In this document: positions 3,285 through 31,123 of the stretch, piece by piece
Layout: the number at the start of each line of letters is the position of its first letter
How positions within the stretch are numbered: the first letter of the stretch is position 1
Made by a program: the position numbers and the translations under genes
Sequence record: OZ195934.1
DNA length: 64,000 bases
Strand: one strand, 5' to 3'
The notes under the pieces: generated by a model
The model's input: only the letters and a program-made list of their open reading frames with translations
The model's database searches: none
What the model was told of the DNA's origin: nothing

Positions 3285-4016
3285 ATGGAAAGAACAGAAA
3301 TCATAATTCCTACCAAGAGCATCAGAAATGCAGGTTATGAATTCGATGTAATAGATACAAGCAAACTAGATCACTTTCACGTTCGATGCGTGACAAATAC
3401 GTTATACGACAACAGCATACAAGGTTCACAACTCGACGGATTTCGTGCCGAGATTACTCTAATGGACGCAGAATCACTAATCTTCTTGAACTCAATGAAT
3501 CTTTATGCTAACTTTACTGAGTCGAACCGTGCAAATAATGGCATGAAGCGCATTAAGTCGGCTCGATATGACTATCATCATTATTATCAACAACAAGAGG
3601 ACTGGTTTAAAGGCATACTACGAAAGAACAGAGTCACCGTAAAATATCCGAACGGGGAAAAGCGAGAAAAGCTTCCTACGTTCTACACGTGCGGGTTGCG
3701 TTTATCAAACGTAAGACGTTCAGCAGATAAAGCTTGTGCCATGCTCGTACTCGATGAGAACGGGAAGCCCAAGATGTATGCGTTCGCTATCGGAAAACTA
3801 AGATACATTTTCGACGCGTACGACCGGTCAGAAAACCTAAACTGCCCCGCGCAAATCGGGAAGAAAACAGTTGACGTAATCGAGTGTTTAGATTACAATG
3901 ACGGAGACGATTGGAATGACGAAAACGAGTTCGAAGAAACGCGTAAATTAATGTCGATTCCAGATGTATCCGATTTAGACAAAGTATTAATGTCATTAGA
4001 CGAAGAAGAGTTTTAG
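3285..4016 (+). CDS. Hypothetical protein, 243 aa
   Basis: Long ORF, no recognisable motif. Confidence 0.75.
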   Translation: MERTEIIIPTKSIRNAGYEFDVIDTSKLDHFHVRCVTNTLYDNSIQGSQLDGFRAEITLMDAESLIFLNSMNLYANFTESNRANNGMKRIKSARYDYHHYYQQQEDWFKGILRKNRVTVKYPNGEKREKLPTFYTCGLRLSNVRRSADKACAMLVLDENGKPKMYAFAIGKLRYIFDAYDRSENLNCPAQIGKKTVDVIECLDYNDGDDWNDENEFEETRKLMSIPDVSDLDKVLMSLDEEEF

Positions 4017-4017
4017 T

Positions 4018-4311
4018 ATGAATGAAGTAACAACTTACACCGACACAAAAGAACTAGCACTAGACATCGCAGCATACGCATCACTATTAGTTAAGATGGG
4101 ATATTGCGAATGTGTTGAAAATCAAAAACTCTTTGTTGAAATGTGTAACGAAGCAGGGTTCAGAACAGTAACCGGAAAAGAATTTTCTCAAATGTCATTT
4201 CGACAGATGTTCGCTCGACTTCCAGCACGCATTAGTGAAGAAATCAAAGCACAATTCTCATGGGGTAACAACGCACCAAATGAGTCTATTCTTGAAAGCG
4301 TTTACGTATAG
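4018..4311 (+). CDS. Hypothetical protein, 97 aa
   Basis: ORF in operon. Confidence 0.75.
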   Translation: MNEVTTYTDTKELALDIAAYASLLVKMGYCECVENQKLFVEMCNEAGFRTVTGKEFSQMSFRQMFARLPARISEEIKAQFSWGNNAPNESILESVYV

Positions 4312-8118: not shown

Positions 8119-9699
8119 TTATTTGAAAAGTCGTTTCCACCAAGGCTTCTTCAACTCATCAATTTGTTGTTGCTGTTCTTTGATCGCTTCGATTAGCAAG
8201 CCAACCATGTTCCCGTACGCGACGCTTAAGTGCTCTTTCCCTTCGACTACAGCCTCAGGAAGAACCGCTTGTACCTCTTGAGCAATTACACCCGTCTGTC
8301 TGCTATACTCGTTGTTATCATCATTCGTACGGTTGTACGTGATACCACGAATCTGTTTCACTTTCTCAAGTGGATTTTCGATAACTTCAATATCAGTCTT
8401 CAGTGCAATATCTGAATAAGCAGTGATGTTACCATAACAGTAGAAATCAGCAGCATTTGTAGATGAAGTCCCTGACAATATCAAGCCATTGCTTTCGTGT
8501 CGCAATTGGCATGCAGTATGCCCAGCTCTATGGAAGCCCATCGACGCGTCGCCCGCATCGCTATTCTGAATTTCAAACTGACCAGTCGTATAATTTGGAG
8601 TCGAGCCGACGTTATTCACGATCGACAGCTTGCCAGTCATCGTGTCGCCCGCTTTGTACGTATAGCGTGCATTCGATTCTGTCTCAGTATAATAGCGACC
8701 ATCATGCGTGTGACTATCGTTCGCAACAGTAACTGTTAGTGTTTGATTAGCCGAACCATCGATTGAAACACTACCACTTGCATCACCGCCTAATGTGATT
8801 GTACGAGCAGTCGCCCATTTCGTTGCAGACGATGCATTACCCGATAACGCTCCACTAAACGTTCCGGCAGTCACTGTACCCGTAACAGTGACACCACTTG
8901 TTGTAGTTTCAAGTTTCGTGCTGCTATTGTAATAAAGACGAATGCCTGCACTGTCAGTTGCTTGCCACAACCATACATTACTAGTGTCATCATACAGACC
9001 ACACGTAGTACCATCAGCCATCAACGACCAAACTGTCTCACTTGCGGTATTGTCAATGCATATACCAGCCCACCCCGACGTTTGCGACTCAACCACTAGC
9101 AGGTCTGGTCGATGAGAAGCTTCACCGAGTTTAACACCAGACCCCAATGTGATTGACGTACCACTCAGATTCGTAAATGTATCAGTTGCATCAGAACGCA
9201 AAAACGATGTTGAATTGATGCCATCCAGCAACTGAGCATCGGCTGCTTTTGCAACAGTCACAGACAATGAAGCATTTGCAGAGCCGTCCCAAGACACAGA
9301 ACCGCTCACATCGCCCGTCAGCGTCAACGTACGAGCCGTTGTCCACTTATCTGCGTTAGGGTGGTACGTATCATGAAACACGCGCTGACCCGTTGCATAG
9401 ATTTCCCCCTCGACTTGCAAGTTAACCGTCGCAGCAGTCGAGCCACTTGAACGCAAGATTAGCGCCTGACCAGACCCGTATATATCACCGTCAGTGATTT
9501 CGTGAATCAACTCAGCATTTTGAGCTGCGCTAGTTGTCCACTCGATGCCGGAATTTCCTGTAGCGTAGTTAGTTTCTTCTATAACGAGGCGAGTGCTCAC
9601 ACCGCTAACAACTAAACTTTCGACACTTACATCTTTCAAAGACGCGATTCCGGTCACGTCGATGCTACCATATACTTTAGTAGGGCCTAACTTAGCCAT
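8119..9699 (-). CDS. Second tail fibre protein with S74 chaperone domain
   Basis: Same repeat family; C-terminal AYSDIALKTDI...GVIAQEVQAVLPEAV. Confidence 0.85.
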   Translation of the reverse strand: MAKLGPTKVYGSIDVTGIASLKDVSVESLVVSGVSTRLVIEETNYATGNSGIEWTTSAAQNAELIHEITDGDIYGSGQALILRSSGSTAATVNLQVEGEIYATGQRVFHDTYHPNADKWTTARTLTLTGDVSGSVSWDGSANASLSVTVAKAADAQLLDGINSTSFLRSDATDTFTNLSGTSITLGSGVKLGEASHRPDLLVVESQTSGWAGICIDNTASETVWSLMADGTTCGLYDDTSNVWLWQATDSAGIRLYYNSSTKLETTTSGVTVTGTVTAGTFSGALSGNASSATKWATARTITLGGDASGSVSIDGSANQTLTVTVANDSHTHDGRYYTETESNARYTYKAGDTMTGKLSIVNNVGSTPNYTTGQFEIQNSDAGDASMGFHRAGHTACQLRHESNGLILSGTSSTNAADFYCYGNITAYSDIALKTDIEVIENPLEKVKQIRGITYNRTNDDNNEYSRQTGVIAQEVQAVLPEAVVEGKEHLSVAYGNMVGLLIEAIKEQQQQIDELKKPWWKRLFK

Positions 9700-9740: not shown

Positions 9741-12700
9741 CCTCATTGAACTCATTGAACATAGCGTCACCATTTGCACCGAAGCTCACATTCCCATTAT
9801 AGTCAACATCTTCACCGTAACTCGGAAGCAGGGGCATTGACTCAGAGCCAGAAAGCAACTCTTCTAGTGTCGGTTGACTGCCGTCCATTACGTCGATTCG
9901 GGGTCTATAAAAGAACTGTTCAGTGTCAGTAGCAGAGCTTTGATACATAAACGCACGCATGTAGTTTTCAGTTGCACCGTCACCCATTGCGTAGTTCGTA
10001 TTAATGCTACTCAAACGATTCCCGTCAACATCGTATATGCCATGATCAATATACGTGTCGTTGTCAGTCGTTCCGTTTGCATATACGTAAGCAACAAGAA
10101 GCACCCATTCATTGTCAAAGTAATTTGTACCGTAATCAAAGTATGGATTCGTGTTTGCAGATCCACTCAAGTTATTTGTCCTTGACCCATTACACCCAAC
10201 ATACCAGTTGCCGTTACCACTCACGCTACGTCGCATCCACAGAGTAAATCTATGATGCTTCGCAGGGTTCATATTAACGTCATGTGCATAAAATCCACCT
10301 GATTGAGTCGTCGAATCTTCTTTATAACCGCGCCACATCACGTCGTCTTCACCCCATGGGTTTTTCGCAACTGCAATGATCGCATTAGAGCCATACACAT
10401 CAAATCCCGGCTGACTTCCTGTGGTTTCTAATGTCCATGTTGAATAGTCAAGCAATCCCGGACGATAATAGCTCTCGACTATCTCACCTGCGTGCATAAC
10501 ACCATCTTTAGTAACTTGCGGCTTATGAAATCCACCAGTCGCAGCGTATTCTTTCGTGTAGTACGAAATTGAACCACTTGAAGCATCATAACGACGTCCA
10601 TCAGAGAACTGAGTCAACAACTCGCCATTCTTGATGCCGATGAAACCCCATGTACCGCGAGACGCAATCGCATGATTCTCAGTGACCCCGAAGTATCGTT
10701 CGAAATATTCACGCAGTGTACCATCTTGCGTCGTACTTGCATCACATCGAGCAGCAGTCATCAGCCAACCATCTTCCATTCGATCAATCGCGTCTTTTAG
10801 ATGATTCGCAGCGGCTTGTGCTGAATCAGGAACATCGTTTGCCGAAGCGACAATCACTTCACCGTCGAACTCGTAATATTGAGCCGTTGTTCCAGAATAC
10901 GTATCAAGACCACCGAACGCACGAAGCGTCATTGTTTGATCGAATATACAGAAGTTAATACCGCGCCAAGAGTCAATATTACCCACCTTAACACCATTCA
11001 AATACGTGCCAGTATTGCCGCTTGAGCTGCTTCGAATCATCAGCGTATTTTCACCGTCATGGTCCCAACCCTCTTGAAACTCTACTGCATGTGCATTGCC
11101 TAGATTATCAACAGACGCCTTCACGTTGTACAAACGAGAAACTTCATCGACTGACAGTGCTTTACCATGAATCGAAACTTCAGTAATATCGCCATTGAAC
11201 GTAGCACCAGTCGTACTAGAATAAGGGTGCATATTCGCGCCAATAGTCCATACGTAGTTTTCTAGCGGCTGAATCACGCCTTCGCTATCAAGCGAGTTTG
11301 CAACTTCACGCACACCATCGACAAACATGTTAGCTAATCGCGTATCGTAATCAAACGTCCATACATAGTGATGCCATTCGCCATCATTAGTATGCGTCGA
11401 ACAAATCGGGTCACTTGAACCCCAACCGTGCATTCTAAATCGATTGCCTTCAAGACACAGCAAAATAGCACCACCAGAGACTTGACTTCCCTCAGTATAA
11501 ATGCCATCATCGTATTTCATGAATGGGTTACGATTATCACCTTGTGTTGTTCTAGCCCAGAATGCAACTGATACTTGACGCGACATGTGATTCGCAGTTG
11601 TTCGAATATGTCTTCGAATATCATTCCAACCAGTACGTCCCGAAGACGGGAAGTGAAAATGACCAGAACCGCGTTCAGTGTCGTTCTCAACATAAGATGG
11701 CGCATAGTCGTATTCAAGAAGAGCATTGTTCTCTAGACCAGTCATATCAGAGACGATAACATCGTCAGCACTGAATTTGCGATATGGGTTTGCCACGTCA
11801 CGATGGCATTCAAATTGAATGTCTTTCGCTTCCATCGTCGCGCCCTCGACTGAGTAATGACCATAGAAGTAAATCGTAATAGAACGATTCACATCAGTGT
11901 CAGAGCCAACAGTCGTCGTATACGATTTGCGTTCCCATTCACCTGCAACGTTTTGCGTGTGTGTTATCTTACCAGATTCCCACTTTGTAGAGTTATCAGC
12001 TCGACGCGTGTAAAATCCAACGTTGAACGTCGCGCCAGTGTGAGTTGAACGCTGCGTCCATGAGACTGTGATTCGGTCGCCAACTTCAAGACCATAATCA
12101 ACTAAATTCCCATGACCGCATGAGATACCCATCCAACGATCCCCGTAACCAAAACGCTGATTATCATTGATATGGCGCATTACAGCTTTACCGTCAATAT
12201 TCACCCATTTCGCGTGATAGCCAATTTCCGGATCAGGGACGCCGCCATTGTAGCCACTTGACCAACTTTCACACAAGATCGCGTCTTTGTTCAGTTCAGT
12301 GTCCCATGTTCCGTTGACGTACGCAGCACCCGGTAGAAAATCAGGGTTACGCGTGCTGTTACGCGGTAGAAACTCGTTCGCCCCGTTCATGTTCCACTTT
12401 GCAACTGTCCCAAGTGCGATGTCTTTCATTTCACGATCTGAAATCGCGTTGTCGTAAAAGCGAACATCTTGCAATCGCACACGAGCACTCGTGTGAGCAA
12501 TCAATGTCACTGCCCCAGTAGGTGGTGATATATCATTCGATACGTTAAACATACGATCAAACTCTGCGTTGATGTATATGCTAACTCTCGTCGGAGTTCT
12601 GCGTATTGTTACGTGATGCCAATCAGCAATAGGCCCGACCCGATAATTGGTTGTAACAACCCCATTACCACTAGTTGCGCCATTGAACCAGTTACACCAG

Positions 12701-14711: not shown

Positions 14712-14737
14712 AAAAAAAGGACGCTATCTGCGTCCTT
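14712..14737 (-). terminator. Intrinsic terminator
   Basis: Minus strand AAAGGACGC-AGATA-GCGTCCTTTTTTT. Confidence 0.8.
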
Positions 14738-15248
14738 TAGTTTTGTTTCTTTTTAGTTTTCGTTTGAGCTTGCGAACTTCTTTACGCTTCGCGATTTTAT
14801 CAGCTCGTCGAACCGCGTCATAATCCGCAGCACAAGACGCTGCAAACGCATCGGGCTTGAATACTGGCTCTTGACCCACATATCCGAAGATCGTGCCCTT
14901 AGCTTCGTTATACGCGACGCTAGACTTGTGTTTAGGGTCTGGGTTAATGTCAACGTGTACTTCAAAGCCGCGAGGGCCGCACATTGGCTTAACTTTCAAC
15001 GCACATTCACCTGCTTTGTATACTTCGTTCATCAAGCGGCTACGAATACCATCAGTAGATGACATATAGGCTTTCTCAGTTTCGATTGTTTTGAATACTT
15101 GAGCGCCTTTACTGCCTTCCAAGTGAATTATGATTACAGTCGCGTAACTGATCATATCACTTTTTCGTTTACTGTCACACCCAACATAGATCGTGCTACT
15201 CGGGTGACTATTTTGAATCGCTGTTTCTACAGCTTCCCAATCGAACAT
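14724..15248 (-). CDS. RNase H-like YkuK/DUF458 family protein
   Basis: IYVGCDS, RLMNEV, EVHVDIN, KPDAFAASCAAD motifs. Confidence 0.8.
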   Translation of the reverse strand: MFDWEAVETAIQNSHPSSTIYVGCDSKRKSDMISYATVIIIHLEGSKGAQVFKTIETEKAYMSSTDGIRSRLMNEVYKAGECALKVKPMCGPRGFEVHVDINPDPKHKSSVAYNEAKGTIFGYVGQEPVFKPDAFAASCAADYDAVRRADKIAKRKEVRKLKRKLKRNKTKGRR

Positions 15249-15297: not shown

Positions 15298-16731
15298 TTA
15301 TAAAGCGTATCGGTCGACACCGACAGTCTTCAGCATGATTTTCACTGGCTCAAGCTCACCACCCAACAGCGACGTTAGAATTGAAGGGCTGCAACCCGAC
15401 ACTAACGCTGTGTTCGCTTCACCTGATTTAACAGGCACGTTGTCTAGACGACCACGCAAGTTCCAGAACACTAGTTGCGGCATTTCGTAGCCCGCGTTCG
15501 CATACATGACTTTGATTGCATCGAAGTTCGTAGTGTTACGAGTATGCCAGCCACCGCCAGTACGAGCTTGATCGAATTCCATATCGCTCATGATAAGCAA
15601 TTTGGTTGGCATTTCGTCTTGCGACAAGTTTGCCGTACGAGCGCGTTCAAGAAGAACTTCGAAGCATCGTGTGATGTTCGTGCTCATATCTTCGCCAGAT
15701 CGTTGCATGTTGTCAAGACGCGACTTCAAGCTATCACCCGTCAACTTGTGAAAGTGCGGATCACTTGAGAACGAAATGAATTGATCTTTGAAGATACCCT
15801 CATTACGTTCAGCGACGTAGATGCCAAGAGACATCGCAACTTCTTTACAAGTCACACTACCACCGTGTTCACCGTTGATACCACAGCCCATAGAGCCAGA
15901 AACATCAACAACTGGAATCACGCGCTCGTCAGAGCCTTCCATGTAGTTCGGTAGAGCTTTCCATTGCTCATTTGCAACACGATGGTCACCCATTTTAACG
16001 CTGCGAACAACATCGTACGGGTAAACAGCACCTGCATTGATCTTCGCTTCACCTTTCACAAGCGATGTGATGTACTCACCGTATGCAGATTCAGCGTTAC
16101 GACCGAATGCTTTCTGATAGCGTGCAGACGCTACAGATGGCAGTTTGCCGAACTCGATCTCGTCCCAATTACGAGCACACATCTTCTGTTCAACAGTGTC
16201 AGACAAAAGAGAGATCACTTTACGCCACTGCTTCGCGTTTACACCAACCGACTTGATTGTGCGCTTGAACACGATAGCGTTTTTGCTGCGCTCACGAGGA
16301 AACCACTTAGCAGCAAGCGCGTTTTTGTCATTGACAATCGCGTGTGTCCACAGAGTGATAGCATCAGCTTCAAGAGAAGTACCGAACGCAGATACTAAGT
16401 CATCGAAACGACCAAGTTCTGGGATCTTGCGCATAACTAGACGCGCCACTTCTGGTTGTTCTTTACACAGACGTGCAAAGATTTTGCGGAAAGTACCGCG
16501 CTCACCTGCACCGCCACGCACGTCGCGAGACCATAGCAAGATGCGAGTTGCAAGCTCAGGGTTTTCACCGAATGCGCGATTAAACGCAGTTAGTGACTGA
16601 TCATTACCGCGCATAGCGCCGATAGTGAAGAACAAGTTTAGACACTCGTTACCCGAAGTGCTGTGTGTTACTGCACCGTTTGCTGTACGTGAATCGTTAG
16701 ATTGCATAGCGTTCATAAATAAACTAGTCAT
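15298..16731 (-). CDS. DUF2828-family TROVE/Ro60-like helical protein with C-terminal vWA domain
   Basis: RDVRGGAGER, GRFDDL, LAAKWFPRE, VVDVSGSM (MIDAS), SDMEFD, FWNLR; start re-assigned to ATG 16731 after SD GGAG. Confidence 0.85.
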   Translation of the reverse strand: MTSLFMNAMQSNDSRTANGAVTHSTSGNECLNLFFTIGAMRGNDQSLTAFNRAFGENPELATRILLWSRDVRGGAGERGTFRKIFARLCKEQPEVARLVMRKIPELGRFDDLVSAFGTSLEADAITLWTHAIVNDKNALAAKWFPRERSKNAIVFKRTIKSVGVNAKQWRKVISLLSDTVEQKMCARNWDEIEFGKLPSVASARYQKAFGRNAESAYGEYITSLVKGEAKINAGAVYPYDVVRSVKMGDHRVANEQWKALPNYMEGSDERVIPVVDVSGSMGCGINGEHGGSVTCKEVAMSLGIYVAERNEGIFKDQFISFSSDPHFHKLTGDSLKSRLDNMQRSGEDMSTNITRCFEVLLERARTANLSQDEMPTKLLIMSDMEFDQARTGGGWHTRNTTNFDAIKVMYANAGYEMPQLVFWNLRGRLDNVPVKSGEANTALVSGCSPSILTSLLGGELEPVKIMLKTVGVDRYAL

Positions 16732-16767: not shown

Positions 16768-17358
16768 ATGTTTCATATTGTATATCAAATAACAAATTTA
16801 ATAAACAACAAAATTTACGTCGGTAAGCATTCAACCGAAAACATTCATGACGAATACATGGGTTCGGGAAAGCTTTTGCTCAGAGCCATTAAAAAGTATG
16901 GCAAGGAGAATTTCACAAAAGACATACTGTTCGTATCATTAGACGAAAAGGATGCATATAAAGCAGAACATGAGATCGTGAATGAAGATTTTGTTCTCCG
17001 TGAAGACACATATAATCTCAAAGTTGGCGGTCTTGGTGGATCATCAGGAATAGAATCTCCATGCAAAGGTCGTCAACTGAGTGAAGATACTAAACTAAAA
17101 ATGAGAAAAAGTAAACAATTTTCTCAAAAACATTTAGATTATCTCTCAACTAAATTATCTGAGTACAACAAATCTAGACAAGGTGTTCAAAGAGACGATC
17201 TAAAGGGTAACTCAAACCCAATGCATCGAGGTAATTGGCATACACCCCACGGAATATTTGAAACATCAAGCGAAGCAGCGTGTGCCATAAAATGTAGTCA
17301 ATCAACAATTGTTAGACGTTGCAAAAATCCAAATTTTGAGGATTGGTACATCAAATAA
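16768..17358 (+). mobile_element. Free-standing GIY-YIG homing endonuclease (Seg-like), antisense insertion
   Basis: IVYQITNLINNKIYVGKH, YMGSG, F.K.IL...E, YNLKVGG, C-terminal HTH; AT-rich. Confidence 0.85.
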
Positions 17359-25992: not shown

Positions 25993-26005
25993 ACTGTGTA
26001 AATAA

Positions 26006-26080
26006 TGGTCGGAGTAGAAGAATTCGAATCTTCACCGCTCGGCCCCAAACCGACTATGCTGCCATTAACACCATACTCCG
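26006..26080 (-). tRNA. tRNA-Pro(UGG)
   Basis: C1-G72, loop UUUGGGG, CCA. Confidence 0.95.
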
Positions 26081-26109
26081 AAAAACTTTTGTAGAACTTC
26101 GTTCTTACA

Positions 26110-26230
26110 TTGTACATGATGTTTTCTTCGTTGTAAACATCTTTTTTGAAAAACTTTTCGTTCGTTTTCGAACGTTTAAATGCTTTTCTCTATTGTACAT
26201 GATGTTTTCGTCATTGTAAACATCTTTTTT
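26110..26230 (-). promoter_or_regulatory. Tandem duplicated T4-type early promoters driving the tRNA array
   Basis: Two near-identical copies of AAAAAAGAT-GTTTACA-17 nt-TACAAT (about 26110-26147 and 26193-26230). Confidence 0.8.
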
Positions 26231-26378
26231 AAATCTTTTTGAATGACTTAACGTTTTTGTTTTAACACGTTAATCATATCACTCGTTTACGACTCGTTAA
26301 ACACTTATTTGTGAATAATTTCGTTAAATTCTATCATCGCGACAGTAGATAACGAGACACGGTCCTAAACGTATCGTT

Positions 26379-26454
26379 TGGCACTCGATATAAGATTCGA
26401 ACTTATAACCTGCGCCTTCGTAGGACGCTGCTCTTCCAATTGAGCTAATCGAGC
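26379..26454 (-). tRNA. tRNA-Arg(ACG)
   Basis: Loop CUACGAA, CCA. Confidence 0.95.
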
Positions 26455-26536
26455 ATTAAAGCTTGTTTGCTTTCTTTGTTTATCATACTCTGCTTTGAAA
26501 GCATGTTAAACAAAGAATTTCAGTTTATTTCGCCCA

Positions 26537-26562
26537 TAAAAAAGGACGCTAATCTGCGTCCT
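26537..26562 (-). terminator. Intrinsic terminator
   Basis: GAGGACGC-AGATTA-GCGTCCTTTTTT. Confidence 0.8.
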
Positions 26563-26591
26563 CAAGTATACTTCTATGTTATACTTTCGGA

Positions 26592-26708
26592 CTACATTCG
26601 TGGATCCCATTTCTGGTTGCCAAACGTCGGATTCGCCAGATATACCGATACTGAGCTAAAGCGCATTTCGCTTCGTAAAATCTCAATATGTGTATTAGAA
26701 TGTGGCAT
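26592..26708 (-). CDS. Putative 38-aa leader peptide
   Basis: AAGAGAG SD; MPHSNTHIEILRSEMRFSSVSVYLANPTFGNQKWDPRM*. Confidence 0.35.
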   Translation of the reverse strand: MPHSNTHIEILRSEMRFSSVSVYLANPTFGNQKWDPRM

Positions 26709-26823
26709 CGTGGCTCTCTTTTCGAACGTAAAAATTGTTGTTTTGTTTTTTCTATAATTGTACTTATAAGACTAAAATCGAGGTTTCGTGCGTTTTTTGC
26801 AAAAAACCTCGAAAAAAGTGAAA

Positions 26824-27063
26824 TTATTTTTTAAAGTGCTTTCTTTTATTGCACTCAGCTAAGATTTCATTGTCATAATGATTCTGAAGCTGCTTGAATT
26901 TCTTGTGCTGATCTGGCGTTAGCTCATTCTCATCACGAAGATTTTTCAAGAACCCAAGAGGTTTACGAAACGACTTGCGATACGAGTCTAAACGCTGATC
27001 AGTCAAACCGACTAGTTGTTTAGGCGTTAGCAATGTCTTATTAATGTCAAAGTTCTTACTCAT
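26824..27063 (-). CDS. Hypothetical basic protein, 79 aa
   Basis: SD AGGGG, ORF. Confidence 0.7.
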   Translation of the reverse strand: MSKNFDINKTLLTPKQLVGLTDQRLDSYRKSFRKPLGFLKNLRDENELTPDQHKKFKQLQNHYDNEILAECNKRKHFKK

Positions 27064-27085
27064 GTGTTACCCCTTGTATTGAAAT

Positions 27086-27200
27086 TGGCTGACCGATGCG
27101 GGACTCGAACCCACGACCACGTGCTTAACAGGCAATTAGAAATGCGGTAGCGATACTTATCAATATCATTTACGTGCTCTACCACTGAGCTAATCGGTCA
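27086..27200 (-). ncRNA. tRNA-Asn(GUU)-shaped RNA with 38-nt insertion in the anticodon stem
   Basis: Deleting 27134-27171 restores stem CGUGC/GCACG and loop CUGUUAA; 8-bp acceptor; G73-CCA. Confidence 0.75.
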
Positions 27201-27205
27201 ATTGT

Positions 27206-27449
27206 TTAGTTCGCTTTTGCAGTGCACCGAGCCACCTCAGAATTGATACATTTCGTTTGACGCGCATTCGGATGGTTACGCTTTGCGTCGTGAGTCTGTC
27301 AGCGATGCATGGCATACACACACCCCGTTTCTCACCTACTCTGCCCTACAGACGTTATCTGCTTGGTTAACAATTGCACTCGCATTAGGTATAACATGTC
27401 ACCGTCATCTTCCGGACGATTTCAGTGTATGCACTCAAAAGCGAACTAA
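27206..27449 (-). ncRNA. About 245-nt structured RNA closed by a long helix
   Basis: UUAGUUCGCUUUUG-AGUGCA / UGCAC-UGCAAAAGCGAACUAA plus internal hairpins; no credible minus-strand ORF. Confidence 0.6.
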
Positions 27450-27462
27450 TGTTGATTCTATT

Positions 27463-28011
27463 CTACTTCTCTCGCAATGTAAACAGCAGATTGCGATAAT
27501 CGAAGTTTCGTTTGTTCTTTGTATTGTAGAAGCTAGTCCAGTCGATTGCAACGGGACAATTCTTACTACCGACACGAGCAATGAATATCTCGTGTGTCGC
27601 GCTGTGCTTCGCGTTATAAGCTCTTACTCGTTTTTCATAGTGAGCTATGTATTCTGCACAAGCAGCGTTGTAATCAGCTCTAGAGAACGTCTTACCTTTC
27701 ATAAAGCGTGCATCAAGATACGGACGAATAACCCGAACGCGTTCTCCCGACCATGCCATATTAAAGCTGTTTTCAATTTCACCTAGAATTTGACCAGTCT
27801 TTAAGTTACGGCTCAGTATGACCCAACAGCGTGTACGACGATAGTCTTCAAAACGCATCACCTTAATGTGTGCATTAATGAATTCATCGCGTTTAGCGTT
27901 GCACTCAATGCGTGCTGCACGACGCTGTTCTTCAGTCATCGACTCTCGAACTTCTTTCGGATACAATGTAGCAAAGCGTTTCGGGCAATCTGCCATCGTT
28001 AGCTTTTTCAT
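27463..28011 (-). CDS. Hypothetical protein, 182 aa
   Basis: SD GAGG, coupled to upstream ORF. Confidence 0.75.
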   Translation of the reverse strand: MKKLTMADCPKRFATLYPKEVRESMTEEQRRAARIECNAKRDEFINAHIKVMRFEDYRRTRCWVILSRNLKTGQILGEIENSFNMAWSGERVRVIRPYLDARFMKGKTFSRADYNAACAEYIAHYEKRVRAYNAKHSATHEIFIARVGSKNCPVAIDWTSFYNTKNKRNFDYRNLLFTLREK

Positions 28012-28218
28012 ATCATACCTCTCTTGCGTTTAAGTTGCGAACGCTCAATTTGATTGAAGACTTGCTTATCTTTTGCTTTATTGCGTCGAGAATTACCCCA
28101 ACGACTTCCAGCACATACACCAAAGCGGTCTTTTTTAAGCTTCTTAGCTAACCACAATGGTACTTCGACACGAGCACGTAAGTAGTGCTTTGCGATGTCT
28201 TTATAAGTCTTGCCCATG
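28008..28218 (-). CDS. Small basic hypothetical protein (MGKTYKD...)
   Basis: SD AGAGG; start moved to ATG 28218. Confidence 0.7.
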
Positions 28219-28230
28219 ATAATTTCCTCT

Positions 28231-28471
28231 TGTTGCCGCTCCGTGGAATCGAACCACGTCAAACACAACACCTCGTCAGCCCAATAAGAGTTTCGAAGTA
28301 AGAGCTTACTAGCACATTAAAGCACGGGGCATTATTTCTCTCAAGCAGTTTTCGACCACCGCGTGAGCTTTCTTATCCCCAGTCCCAGTGATTCAGAACG
28401 AAACATGATAGCGAGTCATGAGTTGAACTAATGTTGGGAAAACACTGCGTATTGTACACCGAGTAAGCGGC
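28231..28471 (-). ncRNA. About 240-nt RNA with tRNA-like acceptor stem and T arm (tmRNA-like topology, non-Ala acceptor)
   Basis: 5' GCCGCUU pairs with 3' GAGCGGC after T arm CGUGG-UUCGAUU-CCACG; internal GCAGUGUUUUC/GAAAACUGC helix. Confidence 0.6.
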
Positions 28472-28485
28472 ATTGTTAATAAACT

Positions 28486-28605
28486 TGGTGCCCTACGTGA
28501 ACGTTGAACGTTTTTCTACTTAGCTTCCATCTACCTCACTCAACGAAGAGCTATAGATTCCGTCAAGGTCTACTTCCACTTGACTAAGCGATTCAAACGT
28601 AGGAC
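28486..28605 (-). ncRNA. 120-nt CCA-ending RNA with acceptor-like stem but no cloverleaf
   Basis: GUCCUACG/CGUAGGGC-A-CCA; no T or anticodon arm. Confidence 0.65.
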
Positions 28606-28644
28606 ATATTTTGAAAGTAGTCTCGTAAAACTACTTTGAGAATA

Positions 28645-28722
28645 TGGTGACCCTCGTGGGACTCGAACCCAACTATCTTTCGGTTATGAGCCGACTGCTT
28701 TTACCAGTTAAGCTAAAGGGCC
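28645..28722 (-). tRNA. tRNA with CAU anticodon, Ile2 (lysidine)-like
   Basis: GGCCC.. acceptor and loop CUCAUAA resemble bacterial tRNA-Ile2. Confidence 0.8.
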
Positions 28723-28723
28723 A

Positions 28724-29089
28724 TTATGTTTCTAGCCATCTACCAATCTTTGCAGCGAAGATGTTTTCTTCTTCGTTGATTAGCGCAGTCGATTTCATTT
28801 GATGAAACATATCTTGCTTGTGAAGCGTATCAAGTTTGACTGCACATTGCAACAACTCTTTTACGCTTCGCATAATTTCTTCTGAATCAAGCTGCGACGT
28901 TTCAGGATGATAAATCAAATTCTGAAGCACAGCTTCTATGTTGCCGTAACAACCCATACCAATAAAATTGATGATAAGTCGATACTGCATTTCTACTGAG
29001 AATGAACAATGCTTGCGCAAATTGCGCTTAACGACTTCACATACTAGCAACTTCTCTTCGAGTTCTTGCTTTATTGCTGTAAACTTCAT
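28724..29089 (-). CDS. Hypothetical protein, 121 aa
   Basis: SD GAGGTG, ORF. Confidence 0.7.
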   Translation of the reverse strand: MKFTAIKQELEEKLLVCEVVKRNLRKHCSFSVEMQYRLIINFIGMGCYGNIEAVLQNLIYHPETSQLDSEEIMRSVKELLQCAVKLDTLHKQDMFHQMKSTALINEEENIFAAKIGRWLET

Positions 29090-29105
29090 TGTTCACCTCT
29101 TAAAA

Positions 29106-29228
29106 TGGTGGAGAGTGCGGGATTCGAACCACGCGGCCAAAAGATTTACTTAGTTAGTGTTTGCAGCATGAATACTTGACAATATTCTGTCAACGTTCTT
29201 TTGCTCTACCAGACTGAGCTAACTCTCC
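29106..29228 (-). ncRNA. tRNA-shaped RNA with about 50-nt domain replacing the anticodon loop
   Basis: Normal acceptor, D and T arms plus CCA; AAAGA/UCUUU stem encloses ACG-hairpin-GUAUUCAUGCUGCAA. Confidence 0.75.
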
Positions 29229-29234
29229 ATTTAA

Positions 29235-29374
29235 AACACATTGAGCAGGGTGCAGGATTCGAACCTGCGTCACGATCTTAGAATGATATGCTGTTTGGGT
29301 TGCTGAATACAAGCTATACAACTTGCGTTTATGCTACGTGTGCTAGCCACTACACCAACCCTGCTCAATGTGTT
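29235..29374 (-). ncRNA. tRNA-shaped RNA with 49-nt motif insertion in anticodon stem, flanked by 17-bp helix
   Basis: D arm GGUGUAGUGGCUAGCAC, T arm GCAGG-UUCGAAU-CCUGC, insert carries UAUUCAGCAACC. Confidence 0.75.
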
Positions 29375-29419
29375 CTAGTGCAATGCCATATGAACTCACA
29401 TGGCATCACTGAACCTGTT

Positions 29420-29584
29420 TTATATTGCCTTAGCTAACCAACACAATCTGAAATCGTGCGCTTTAATAAAGGGAGGGCGTCCCTCTTCGCCAGTTAGCAT
29501 AGATGTGTTGCTATGCACCCATTTGTCAATCATGTCCAAGGCAAACAGAACAATGAATACGAGTGCGAGAAGATATACAATCAA
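29420..29584 (-). CDS. Small membrane protein, 54 aa (TTG start)
   Basis: SD GAGGTG; MIVYLLALVFIVLFALDMIDK... hydrophobic N-terminus; not in ORF track. Confidence 0.5.
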   Translation of the reverse strand: MIVYLLALVFIVLFALDMIDKWVHSNTSMLTGEEGRPPFIKAHDFRLCWLAKAI

Positions 29585-29607
29585 ATTGAAACACCTCGCT
29601 AAAAAGT

Positions 29608-29753
29608 TAGAGCATATTGGTCGTGCGTACTAGAATCGAACTAGTCCTACGATCTCCTAATGATATGCGTTATTGGTTGCTGAATACTTACTTGTCAGTA
29701 AGCGTTATGCTACGTGTGCTGCCACTACACCAACGCACGACCAATATGCTCTA
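29608..29753 (-). ncRNA. Paralogue of 29235..29374 with 48-nt insertion, flanked by 21-bp helix, CCA encoded
   Basis: Same conserved insert, compensatory changes in all helices. Confidence 0.75.
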
Positions 29754-29754
29754 G

Positions 29755-29909
29755 ATTATTTAATTTGCGTGCTACTTGCACGACGACTGAGCGAATTATA
29801 ACTCAGCTAGTTTTTGTTCGAGAACTCGGCGGCTAAGCCTATTCACTGCTTGTCAGAACTTAGAACTGACCTCATGTTTTCATTGCGTCTAACACGCAAA
29901 TTAAATAAT
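29755..29909 (-). ncRNA. 155-nt structured RNA closed by 17-bp helix
   Basis: AUUAUUUAAUUUGCGUG/CACGCAAAUUAAAUAAU; internal hairpins GUCAG/CUGAC and GCUGAG/CUCAGU. Confidence 0.55.
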
Positions 29910-30021
29910 TCTTATCTTCAGTAAAGAGCAGAAACGATAAGACTAGTCTGTTTAATCAATCGTGTTCATCTTCAAGAAGAGGCGAAAACGATGAACTTAG
30001 TTCGCTTAATCAACTGTGTTA

Positions 30022-30145
30022 ATCTTAGCAGCTTTTTCGCTGAAGTCAAACACTTTTTTCAAATTTCTTTCATCGAATCAAGAGTTTGTGTTGCTGTCTC
30101 TCGACTCGATGAAATACATTCTACAGGAAAACAAAGCGAAGTCAA
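30022..30145 (-). promoter_or_regulatory. Two sigma70-type early promoters heading the RNA array
   Basis: TTGACT..TAAGAT (30049-30022) and TTGACT..TAGAAT (30145-30118), both with A-rich UP tracts. Confidence 0.7.
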
Positions 30146-30163
30146 CAAGTATTTTCAACTTTT

Positions 30164-30415
30164 TTACGATTGAATGATAATACCGCTTTCCGTCTCACCG
30201 CGCTCAAGAGCTGCGTGCTTAATCTGTAGTTGTGCTACTGCTTGTTGAAGTTCTGTGATCGTCTGATCATATAGCTTCATGTTGCTTTGCATGTGTTTAA
30301 TCTGATCGCTCTGCAAACCAACGATATAGGTAAGCAAGATGATGCTTTCATTATCTTGCAGTTCTTCACCGTCGTTGTATTTCTTCAGAACAGATTGGAT
30401 TGTAATATCAGCCAT
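30164..30415 (-). CDS. Hypothetical protein with coiled coil
   Basis: Start MADITIQ overlapping upstream stop. Confidence 0.7.
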   Translation of the reverse strand: MADITIQSVLKKYNDGEELQDNESIILLTYIVGLQSDQIKHMQSNMKLYDQTITELQQAVAQLQIKHAALERGETESGIIIQS

Positions 30416-30863
30416 TGTTTTCAGCCCATGACAAATCGAGTGGTTCAACGTATTCGTCTACAAGTCGAACTTCGGCTTCGACGAACAAGGGAGTGATTGC
30501 ATCGTCATACGAAAGCGTGACGTGCGGAGTATAGTCAGGGTAATCGTGAGTACCACCGATAGAGATAAGGTCTTCATGACGCGCTACAAGCTCAGGACAT
30601 TTCATCTTCGCAACAACTGCGTGATTACCGTCTTGAGTTTTCCAGCAATCGATATACTCAATAGTTGCTACGAATGTCGTATCAACGGCAGGCACATCAA
30701 TTTGATTGCGACTGTATAGAACAGTGACGTGAAATTTATCTGGATCTAAAGGATTTGCTAGACGAAGCGATGTCTGCAAGCGAACTAACTCTTGTTTACT
30801 CGATTCGTCTAGTTTGATACCAACGTACGTCCCCTGACTTTCAAGGAACGTAGATAGTTTCAT
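30408..30863 (-). CDS. acb1: gp57B / anti-CBASS nuclease Acb1 homologue (2H phosphoesterase)
   Basis: Two HxT motifs (FHVTVLYSR, YTPHVTLSY), WKTQDG, GTHDYPDY; T4 gp57B position. Confidence 0.9.
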   Translation of the reverse strand: MKLSTFLESQGTYVGIKLDESSKQELVRLQTSLRLANPLDPDKFHVTVLYSRNQIDVPAVDTTFVATIEYIDCWKTQDGNHAVVAKMKCPELVARHEDLISIGGTHDYPDYTPHVTLSYDDAITPLFVEAEVRLVDEYVEPLDLSWAENNG

Positions 30864-31123
30864 TATTCTGCTTCTTTTTCTTCAGTTGGTTCAGCAGGGC
30901 GTTCAGCCTTGCCAGTAAGAATCGCGATCTCGTCAACGTAGTTTTGAAGAGACGCTGCTTTCTCTTGATCGAAATCAAGTAGCTGTGCAAGTACACCCAC
31001 GAATTGACCGAAAGACTGACGTTCAGCTTGTAGAGTTTCTTGAGTGTCGAATTGACGAACTTTCAGATCTTTTACTTGAGCTTGAAGAGTTTCGATTACT
31101 TGTTCTGGAGTTTGTTGTGACAT
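30863..31123 (-). CDS. gp57A: gp57A tail-fibre chaperone
   Basis: Coiled coil LQAQVKDLKVRQFD; located between gp1 and 57B. Confidence 0.75.
   Translation of the reverse strand: MSQQTPEQVIETLQAQVKDLKVRQFDTQETLQAERQSFGQFVGVLAQLLDFDQEKAASLQNYVDEIAILTGKAERPAEPTEEKEAE

Follow-up and report, generated by a model that had tools for sequence, protein, structure and literature searches.

Interrupted tRNA-like RNAs in the tRNA cluster of T4-like Vibrio phages are candidate Y-RNA-type partners of a Ro60-like ring protein

What is the role of two RNAs shaped like transfer RNAs (tRNAs), each interrupted in its anticodon stem by an inserted arm of 48 or 49 nucleotides (nt), in a phage tRNA cluster that already encodes 26 standard tRNAs for all 20 amino acids? 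The two RNAs, here called E3 and E4, lie on the minus strand of a 64,000-nt stretch of sequence record OZ195934.1 (hereafter the window), and an 801-nt query spanning them (29000-29800) is 100% identical to the Vibrio crassostreae phages 6E35.1a and D48x and 75-82% identical to KVP40, phi-pp2, VH7D, phi-Grn1, VS1, CZ01 and F86 of the T4-like Schizotequatrovirus. Particles of Ro60 and Y RNA are familiar from animals and from some bacteria. The tRNA-like Y RNAs are encoded beside Ro60 and bound by it, phages included (PMC4201824, PMC12135203). Here we report that E3 and E4 belong to a family of conserved, covarying tRNA-like RNAs, linked in relatives to genes of the DUF2828 family, whose member in the window models as a Ro60-like ring. 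We propose, with a probability of about one half, that E3 and E4, together with the further members E1 and E2, are unpermuted tRNA-like partners of this phage protein of the Y-RNA type.

The sequences of E3 and E4 were parsed into the following parts.
29241-29364, minus strand: E3 core, a tRNA-shaped RNA (sequence parse; 133 bits with covariance model R1; covariation).
29364-29358 and 29251-29245, minus strand: acceptor stem of E3 (sequence parse).
29355-29340, minus strand: D arm of E3, with CG at 29338-29337 (sequence parse).
29288-29336, minus strand: 49-nt inserted arm of E3, with base UAGC/GCAAC and a hairpin of six base pairs (bp) at 29325-29310, loop GUAU.
29287-29273, minus strand: AUC-loop-GAUCG of E3, with the T arm at 29268-29252 (sequence parse).
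29618-29739, minus strand: E4 core, a tRNA-shaped RNA (sequence parse; 124 bits with R1; tRNA-Pro-like features).
29739-29733 and 29628-29622, minus strand: acceptor stem of E4 (sequence parse).
29730-29716, minus strand: D arm of E4, with CG at 29714-29713 (sequence parse).
29665-29712, minus strand: 48-nt inserted arm of E4, with hairpin CUUACU-GACA-AGUAAG at 29702-29687, loop GACA.
29664-29650, minus strand: AUC-loop-GAUCG of E4, with the T arm at 29645-29629 and ACCA at 29621-29618 (sequence parse).

Read from 29364 to 29241, E3 opens with the acceptor strand GCAGGGU (pairing with ACCCUGC) and UG, followed by the D arm GUGU-AGUGGCUA-GCAC, an A and CG. The insert then runs UAGCAUAAACG-CAAGUU-GUAU-AGCUUG-UAUUCAGCAACCCAAACAGCAU, with an A-rich strand facing UAUUCA and a linker that terminates in GCAU, and is followed by AUC-AUUCUAA-GAUCG, UGAC and the T arm GCAGG-UUCGAAU-CCUGC; the 3′ end has UCAA instead of CCA. 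E4, read from 29739 to 29618, follows the same plan with acceptor CGUGCGU/ACGCACG, loop AUUAGGA, T stem ACUAG/CUAGU and an encoded ACCA. Both RNAs thus share a 7-bp acceptor, U8 and G9, a GUGU/GCAC D stem with a GG loop, A26, C27 and G28, the insert between nucleotides 28 and 29 of the anticodon stem, AUC with a 7-nt loop and GAUCG, a 4-nt variable region, and a 5-bp T stem with a UUCGAWU loop, and in both inserts UAGCAUAA(A)CG leads into a hairpin of 6 bp and a 4-nt loop, after which come UAUUCAGCAACC, six spacer nucleotides and GCAU. The acceptor, T-stem, hairpin and outer-helix sequences of E3 are unlike those of E4, yet all are paired. Further hallmarks of a cloverleaf, namely A14, G18G19, A21 and a T loop of the form UUCRANY, are likewise present in both, while the D and T loops are altered in the metagenomic member L093. 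Minimum-free-energy z-scores were −3.6 for E3 and −5.9 for E4, with none of 200 shuffles equally stable.

Intact E3 and E4 were missed by default ARAGORN and by the Rfam tRNA model at its gathering score. Deleting the insert in silico yielded canonical tRNAs by ARAGORN, Arg-UCU from E3 and Leu-UAG from E4, restoring a canonical anticodon stem-loop, in agreement with the original prediction, an earlier reading of the letters that described the two RNAs as paralogous tRNA mimics and held that removal of the insert leaves a 7-nt loop. The uninterrupted 5-bp anticodon stem of a decoding tRNA is absent from E3 and E4, which carry the insert, and several orthologues have 8-nt loops in place of the usual 7 nt.

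We then compared homologues in an alignment, A4, of 15 distinct sequences, comprising orthologues from eight Vibrio phages and three uncultured aquatic-phage sequences. Standard pairs occupied 99.8% of cells, compared with 78% in shuffles, and double-sided changes occurred in 18 of 30 pairs, including 7/7 in the acceptor, 6/6 in the hairpin and 4/5 in the T stem. The covariation score was 0.543 versus 0.124 in shuffles, and the observed values were reached by none of 500 shuffles; sliding the partners by 1-3 columns lowered pairing to 24-41%. The claim that a structurally constrained, paralogous tRNA-shaped pair carries an inserted arm, and that its paired regions differ in sequence yet covary across phages, is therefore borne out by the parse and the alignment.

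Other parts contrasted with these covarying helices. The D stem, A26, the anticodon-stem halves (CG/CG and AUC/GAU), the arm base UAGC/GCNA and the GCAUAUCAU segment were invariant, so that Vibrio phages and distant metagenomic phages have the same junction and arm-base sequences, whereas helix sequences are free to drift; overall, the Vibrio-phage and distant uncultured-phage RNAs are ~75% identical, with blocks free of variation. Since the helices need only pair while the junction is fixed in sequence, the pattern carries the signature of a specific recognition surface and, as far as the alignment can tell, fits sequence-specific recognition. RNAalifold offered an alternative pairing of the anticodon arm (CAUAUC/GAU-C-GUG with G29:C70), which cannot be separated from the pairing of the original prediction because all junction columns are invariant; we prefer the latter because it retains a normal 4-nt variable region. 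A pseudoknot of the hairpin loop (UGAUA) with the invariant UAUCA was rejected, as the loop varies (GACA, GUAU, GUUA, GUAA, GUGA) without compensation.

The anticodon-like loop keeps A32, U33 and the 3′ RA, while its centre changes and its length is 7-8 nt. The E3 loop is AUUCUAA in the window, AUUCAUAA in KVP40, F86, VS1, CZ01 and V07, AUUUCCAA in phi-Grn1 and VH7D, and AUUUCAA in V09; the E4 loop is AUUAGGA in the window and F86 and AUAGGGA in all remaining orthologues; and metagenomic members have AUCCGAA (L093), AUUCAGAA (L019) and AUUAGAA (L032). On the same body, the anticodon would be read as UCU, UUC, UCAU or UUCC in E3 orthologues and as UAG or AGG in E4 orthologues, with loops that are constant inside sub-lineages and switch between them. 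Because the body is fixed while the anticodon changes, this is not evolution of the decoding-tRNA type, and the orthologues lack the conserved anticodon and identity of a decoding tRNA. The suggestion that the RNAs specifically protect tRNA-Arg/Leu is weakened by these readings, since a loop centre that varies among orthologues gives no basis for conserved Arg/Leu mimicry.

Both cores are closed by long outer helices beyond the acceptor stem.
29365-29377, minus strand: 5′ arm of the E3 outer helix, pairing with 29232-29244 (inverted repeat I2).
29232-29244, minus strand: 3′ arm of the E3 outer helix, with E2 immediately after it.
29740-29753, minus strand: 5′ arm of the E4 outer helix, pairing with 29608-29621 (inverted repeat I1).
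29608-29621, minus strand: 3′ arm of the E4 outer helix, containing ACCA.

An inverted-repeat finder placed the arms at 29232-29251/29358-29377 for E3 (20 nt, 95%) and 29601-29628/29733-29760 for E4 (28 nt, 89%). Past the 7-bp acceptor, E3 has 13 contiguous pairs, found in 8/8 orthologues with compensatory changes, and E4 has 14, found in 7/8 orthologues with a single mismatch in the other, so that the encoded ACCA of E4 is sequestered in a conserved helix. The helices are retained in all 16 Vibrio-phage orthologues, with compensation such as AACACAUUGA/UCAAUGUGUU versus AGCAUAUAGU/ACUAUAUGUU. Stems of 17 and 21 bp had been predicted, and the 21 bp of E4 stand, whereas the figure for E3 counts Watson-Crick pairs only and becomes 20 with G-U and A-U extensions. 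The idea that these are stems of the RNase III type holds in so far as the helices are real and compensated in the Vibrio phages, but not as a general feature: metagenomic members and a 183-kb IMG/VR contig (L181) have a free NCCA end instead, and we therefore regard the outer helix as a lineage-specific addition, not a defining part. Its length of 20-21 bp suggests that an RNase III-like enzyme may process it. Given the interrupted stem, the changing loop, an E3 without CCA, the buried ACCA of E4 and the presence of 26 normal tRNAs, E3 and E4 are probably not ordinary decoding tRNAs.

The family proved wider than the pair first described, whose paralogy stands but whose scope left out two of the four members in the window.
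29106-29228, minus strand: E2, third member (Rfam tRNA 49.8 bits with a 52-nt insertion; orthologue alignment; R1 37 bits).
27087-27199, minus strand: E1, fourth member (Rfam tRNA 49.1 bits; R1 52 bits).

Rfam recognized E1 and E2 as tRNAs of 110-120 nt. E2 has another tRNA body (GGAGAGU..ACCA) with a 52-nt insert after an AAAGA anticodon stem, containing ACG-hairpin-GUAUUCA..GCAAAC, and E1 has a tRNA body with a ~49-nt insert containing the hairpin GAUAUU-GAUA-AGUAUC, then GCCA; in the module that they have in common, an A-rich strand is followed by ACG or AAU, then by a hairpin of 6 bp whose loop is of the GAUA or AAUA type, and finally by (G)UAUUCA..GCA or GCUACCGCA. KVP40 has five members, three of which are annotated as tRNA-Pseudo-3 (E1), tRNA-Pseudo-4 (E2) and tRNA-Pseudo-5. 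The last, E5, is absent from the window and lies on the minus strand at 4143-4258 in our KVP40 locus (L001) and at 3739-3855 in that of phi-Grn1 (L003); its anticodon stem CCGGC/GCCGG surrounds the module and a second hairpin, UGCAU-UUAC-AUGCA, leaving no anticodon-type loop. In KVP40 and phi-pp2, E1, E2 and E5 are labelled tRNA-Pseudo or tRNA-OTHER, and the annotation of phi-Grn1 gives family members arbitrary amino-acid labels. L181 carries two more module-bearing tRNA-like RNAs, one with an E2-like body and one with a different body and an AUUCCAA loop, and its module, AAAACG-CAAACU-GAYA-AGUUUG-UAUUCAGCA, is near-identical to that of E3 and E4. Throughout the family, the arm is an irregular hairpin of 41-52 nt that combines an A-rich strand, a hairpin of 6 bp whose loop is mostly GNNA, and a UAUUCAGC-like sequence. 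It always lies 5′ to the anticodon stem-loop and enters after nucleotide 27, 28 or 31. NCCA is encoded in E1, E2, E4 and all metagenomic members.

The link to a protein came from a metagenome scan with a DNA pattern of the RNA alone, blind to any protein. The first scan returned at least 120 loci, nearly all due to chance, and six real ones after BLAST and regular-expression filtering; stricter RNA patterns found nothing new in IMG/VR and nothing in 185,579 bacterial or archaeal genomes. One further IMG/VR pattern match, L214, was discarded as a chance match inside a coding sequence. The six true loci represent three distinct sequences (L070, identical to L046 and L032; L019, identical to L074; and L093), and in all six the RNA lies 79-104 nt upstream of a same-strand open reading frame (ORF) of 474 amino acids (aa) with DUF2828 and DUF7788 domains (phrog_850, "RNA-binding protein"), with promoter-like −35/−10 hexamers, read by eye, just upstream of the RNA. 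The DUF2828 proteins of the three sequences are 69-83% identical. In L181, the order is the reverse, and the two arm-bearing RNAs follow the DUF2828 gene at a distance of ~500 nt.

A conserved leader (7120-7194 in L070, with equivalents in L019 and L093) separates the RNA from the start codon of the DUF2828 gene and forms a covarying hairpin, UUAGAUUC-AGCA-GAAUCUAA, which in L093 is UUAGGUUC-AGCC-GGACCUAA; the loop region UUCAGC also occurs in the UAUUCAGC of the module, and an alternative long-range pairing, AGGUUAG/CUAACCU, lies beside the ribosome-binding site. This leader may be an autoregulatory operator.

The window encodes a protein of the same family.
15298-16731, minus strand: DUF2828+DUF7788 gene, 477 aa, the proposed partner (Pfam; AlphaFold model; Foldseek; RNA-adjacent homologues).

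The gene lies at the distal end of the tRNA cluster, and its product is 44% identical to the metagenomic homologues. A fold comparison was needed because sequence search of the PDB gave only spurious repeat-protein matches. In Foldseek, the AlphaFold 2 model (pLDDT 79) had as its top nine PDB matches only Ro60/TROVE proteins (E 2e-8 to 5e-7, probability 1.0, TM ~0.55), including the Ro60 of Thermus phage phiLo, Xenopus Ro with and without RNA, human Ro60 and Deinococcus Rsr, followed by vWA/MIDAS domains; the MIDAS sequence DVSGS (DxSxS motif) is invariant in the alignment. The protein thus models as a Ro60/TROVE-like HEAT ring with a C-terminal vWA domain and MIDAS. A link to DUF2828, as a binding partner to be checked, had been raised in the original prediction, and this link gains support from the predicted fold and from the same RNA lying directly upstream of a DUF2828 gene in metagenomic relatives. 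The family has more than 7,900 homologues, and its 711 phage records include Felix O1-like, Listeria, Staphylococcus and Campylobacter phages and mycobacteriophages (annotated "Ro-like RNA binding protein"); no T4 homologue is among the listed phage matches, and no search was aimed at T4. In the literature, we found nothing on the KVP40 pseudo-tRNAs, on RNA binding by DUF2828 proteins or on transcriptomes of these phages.

The next gene downstream of the Ro60-like one encodes a 174-aa RNase H-like protein (PF04308, YkuK-type; 14724-15248, minus strand), which could be a nuclease partner, and a GIY-YIG (SegE-like) homing endonuclease gene (16768-17358, plus strand) lies between the Ro60-like gene and the small-ORF/tRNA region.

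Taking these observations together, we favour a model in which the RNAs are Y-RNA-type partners of the ring protein. They would be transcribed early from sigma-70-type promoters, within the transcripts of the tRNA cluster, and in Vibrio phages the terminal helix of 20-21 bp would close and block the acceptor end and could be cut by a double-strand-specific nuclease such as RNase III to release discrete RNAs, which would be neither aminoacylated nor used for decoding. The invariant junction (ACGUAGCA ... GCNAY ... GCAUAUCAU ... AGAUCGUG) and the irregular arm would form the site recognized by the protein, and the tRNA-like body with its exposed loop would tether or present tRNA-recognizing factors, such as host nucleases or repair and processing enzymes, to the ring, a tethering that may serve phage RNA quality control or counter-defence.

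Several observations weigh against this model. The YrlA signature GNCGAAN0-1G is absent from E3, E4 and their orthologues, and the topology differs from that of YrlA. In every member tested (7/7), deletion of the insert gives a perfect canonical tRNA, and the tRNA-Pro identity-like features of E4, along with the NCCA encoded in E1, E2, E4 and the metagenomic members, have the look of a functional, intron-bearing tRNA. The three metagenomic sequences, which a common conserved leader marks as one clade, are not three independent cases, leaving the linkage to rest on two lineages outside the Vibrio phages; in the window itself, 12.5 kb separate E3 and E4 from the DUF2828 gene, which shares their strand but lies on the far side of the tRNA cluster. 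Moreover, 78 of 80 IMG/VR DUF2828 loci have no such RNA within 3 kb, and an Rfam scan of nine other DUF2828 loci gave no match at all.

Because deletion gives a clean tRNA, NCCA is encoded and E4 has tRNA-Pro-like features, we keep in play, as the main rival, the quite unlikely explanation that these are intron-bearing tRNA genes, in which the 41-52-nt insert would be a new small intervening sequence, removed by a protein-dependent or other mechanism, possibly aided by the Ro-like protein and a phage or host RNA ligase, to yield functional tRNAs such as Pro-AGG from most E4 orthologues, some with 8-nt loops. The deleted forms have an intact 5-bp stem, U33, purine 37 and all tertiary-interaction nucleotides; E4, with C1:G72 and A73 and, in most orthologues, G35 and G36, is weakly nearest to the window's tRNA-Pro (there is no clear nearest tRNA for E3); and one module in unlike tRNA bodies, at differing positions, resembles a mobile intron. 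However, no group I intron or known ribozyme matched in 26000-31000 at Rfam E ≤ 10, nor did any riboswitch, and group I introns are far longer than 48 nt; inspection revealed no evident bulge-helix-bulge, and no splicing endonuclease was among the ~30 window proteins scanned. The anticodon changes among orthologues while body and discriminator stay constant, the E5 of KVP40 has no anticodon-type loop after the module, a full tRNA set is already encoded, and the intron-like arm is better conserved than the "exon" helices. A combined version, in which the inserts are small protein-dependent introns and the Ro60-like ring binds the junction or arm and chaperones excision and re-ligation, is a long shot; if true, tRNAs with lineage-switching anticodons, including 8-nt loops reading four bases, would make up a regulated, phage-private decoding set.

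Another possible role is independent of the Ro-like protein. Phage tRNAs counter tRNA-directed defences, and free-standing decoys or sponges could act as bait for, or competitive inhibitors of, tRNA-targeting nucleases or tRNA-binding enzymes, with the arm blocking cleavage or ribosome entry and the loop diversifying with the host nuclease repertoire. The preserved loop architecture (A32, U33, purine-A at 37-38) around a central 2-3 nt that switch between lineages and are stable in sub-lineages, and the several paralogues with unlike loops in each genome, would suit such decoys. We nevertheless consider them unlikely: the invariant junction and arm and the tight DUF2828 linkage in relatives are left unexplained, no anticodon nuclease target was identified, and the loop variation is equally compatible with relaxed constraint. 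That I3 (a structured RNA described below), E4 and E3 are consecutive, each with a ~20-bp closing helix conserved by compensation, and flank small ORFs might instead indicate cis-acting punctuation, in which helices and tRNA-like folds are RNase III/RNase P signals that cut a polycistronic early transcript and control how stable or how well translated the adjacent small ORFs are, as tRNA-like punctuation does in other systems, without a role in trans. Such signals need neither an invariant 48-nt arm nor a preserved anticodon-like loop, metagenomic and L181 members keep arm and junction without the outer helix, and the family is dispersed in the cluster, with E1 2 kb away, making this explanation very unlikely. 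As for decay, the annotation of E1, E2 and E5 in KVP40 and phi-pp2 treats them as pseudo-tRNAs, that is, tRNA genes inactivated by insertion and functionless, yet every helix, the insert hairpin included, is kept by compensatory changes, and the RNAs are conserved with unvarying blocks in distant uncultured phages; because the covariation contradicts it, this reading is effectively refuted.

The surroundings of E3 and E4 contain further features, with all relevant genes and RNAs on the minus strand in the order 57A and 57B, then the tRNA cluster from ~29750 down to 21195, which is the layout of T4, whose cluster likewise lies downstream of 57B.
29755-29909, minus strand: I3, a conserved structured RNA of ~155 nt (inverted repeat; conservation; consensus fold).
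30408-30863, minus strand: Acb1, anti-CBASS homologue of T4 57B (PF23474, E 1e-44).

I3 lies directly 5′ of E4, and a stem of ~20 bp, AUUAUUUAAUUUGCGUG.../...CACGCAAAUUAAAUAAU, closes it around three or four hairpins. Its conservation among Vibrio phages is 77-82%, its consensus fold includes 11 covarying pairs, with compensation in the closing stem, and it matched no Rfam family. I3 possibly belongs to the same transcript and RNA set as E3 and E4, and could be a Y-RNA-type partner that is not tRNA-like, or a leader. Upstream of I3 and E4, two sigma-70-like promoters (TTGACT-16-TAGAAT and TTGACT-16-TAAGAT) lie at 29930-30150 on the minus strand within a tandemly repeated unit of ~90 nt, and a 23-nt inverted repeat is found at 30062-30120. 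Further upstream is the Acb1 gene, so that, the 57B homologue being Acb1, a counter-defence gene adjoins the RNA cluster. Between E4 and E3, a 54-aa ORF (29420-29584, minus strand) has a hydrophobic N-terminus and a GAGG ribosome-binding site; in KVP40, a small ORF, KVP40.0319 (73 aa), occupies the equivalent place and, as annotated, overlaps the 3′ end of E4.

Other DUF2828 loci hold further tRNA-like candidates. About 16 of the 80 IMG/VR loci have a tRNA cluster within 3 kb after the DUF2828 gene, and DUF2828-linked clusters contain expanded tRNA-like RNAs of another class (L153 6259-6404; L154 6357-6480 and 6798-6946; L155 6357-6468 and 6748-6868; L200 5267-5382), with a GGCGGAAU(U)GGUAGACGC-type D arm, anticodon-arm elaborations of 30-73 nt and mostly no CCA, which suggests that expanded tRNA mimics near a DUF2828 protein are more general. 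In mycobacteriophage Krypton555 (L215), a YrlA-like permuted core at 4073-4137 on the plus strand, 140 nt downstream of the DUF2828-family gene, comprises a T arm, a closed acceptor-like stem, a D arm and then GGUCGAAG (Rfam YrlA 38 bits, below gathering score). In Felix O1 (L216), the DUF2828-family gene is directly upstream of the tRNA cluster, and covariance model R1 found no arm-bearing tRNA-like RNA in that cluster; three unannotated tRNA-model matches there (8819-8892, 9834-9912 and 10512-10599, plus strand; two weak, at 32-33 bits) are candidates for the Y RNAs suspected beside the homologous gp130 of phage Bas63.

How do E3 and E4 compare with known systems? The T4 RNAs RNAC and RNAD (species 1 and 2), whose function is unexplained (PMC3014915, PMC9697503), are likewise small stable RNAs in a syntenic tRNA cluster downstream of 57A/57B, and RNAC has long stems and a T-arm-like terminal hairpin, CCGGG-UUCGAAU-CCCGG, but they are not complete cloverleaves. 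Homology was rejected, as only synteny is shared: R1 found only tRNA-Arg and tRNA-Thr at the T4 locus, and the folds differ. Introns of tRNAs, whether archaeal ones with a bulge-helix-bulge or group I introns in the anticodon loops of bacterial and phage tRNAs, also lie in the anticodon arm, their removal restores a canonical tRNA, and the non-canonical 28/29 site is known in archaea; E3 and E4 differ in having no group I core (at least 200 nt, with a P1-P9 core and a match to Rfam Intron_gpI, a definition outside which the 48-49-nt inserts fall), no evident bulge-helix-bulge, an insert that is their most conserved part and an anticodon that is not conserved. An intron after all would mean a new splicing system. 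Phage tRNAs that evade defences are similar in being tRNA-cluster RNAs with altered anticodon arms, and here the genome carries the counter-defence gene Acb1, but those tRNAs are functional decoders with point changes in the loop, and have neither a 48-nt arm nor a closed acceptor end.

Parallels are also offered by phages with a Ro60-fold protein and candidate RNAs encoded beside it. In Thermus phage phiLo, Ro60 assembles with the PNPase of the host and binds two Yrl RNAs that are encoded upstream (PMC12135203), although these RNAs are stem-bulge-stem structures with a CGAA motif, not cloverleaves. For jumbo phages, TROVE proteins have been considered as platforms of RNA repair that have a tRNA-like partner (PMC7824862). 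The gp130 proteins of the Felixounavirus Bas63 and of Felix O1 are of the same DUF2828 family, are 44% identical to the window protein and adjoin a tRNA cluster. That of Bas63 was found to act against the Ppl defence, in a study that also raised the speculation that some of the neighbouring "tRNA" genes may be Y RNAs (bioRxiv 10.1101/2024.10.10.617714); no RNA partner has been identified for gp130. Our model would offer a testable candidate RNA partner for the DUF2828 family, which is far larger than that of the known Ro60-Y RNA particles, with thousands of metagenomic homologues and no identified RNA partner, and of which one member is already tied to escape from bacterial defence. It would also explain the "pseudo-tRNAs" of KVP40, noted since 2003, and give a fresh angle on the stable RNAs of T4-type clusters.

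A last comparison is with YrlA (RF02553). An Rfam YrlA match at 29170-29296 (28.2 bits; gathering score 69) combines the T arm of E3 with the D arm of E2 and is an artefact because it spans two adjacent genes, of the tandem-tRNA kind about which Chen et al. warn for this model (PMC4201824). Since the model is otherwise unmatched, the motif is absent (KVP40 E5 has no more than AACGAAG) and the order is unpermuted, E3 and E4 fall outside the YrlA family as defined. They nevertheless resemble it in a tRNA-like module, with T and D arms, an acceptor-like stem and tertiary nucleotides, to which a conserved irregular helix is attached at the place of the anticodon stem; in several paralogues per genome; in a terminal 5′/3′ stem that closes the Vibrio versions; and, for the metagenomic relatives and L181, in placement beside a Ro60-type gene on the same strand, for which YrlA is defined by a distance of within ~4 kb of a Ro60 orthologue, compared with 79-104 nt in L070, L019 and L093, ~500 nt in L181 and 12.5 kb in the window. 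They differ in that an internal hairpin, and not the 5′/3′ terminal stem, provides the conserved helix, in keeping an anticodon-like stem-loop, and in their candidate partner, a divergent Ro60-like protein of the DUF2828 family. The order in YrlA is T-acceptor loop-D, whereas E3 and E4 run from the 5′ acceptor through the D arm, anticodon and T arm to the 3′ acceptor, a topology that would result from opening YrlA at its acceptor loop and closing it at its terminal stem. If E3 and E4 are indeed Y-RNA-type partners, they would represent a new architecture, a whole, unpermuted tRNA with a recognition helix grafted into its anticodon stem.

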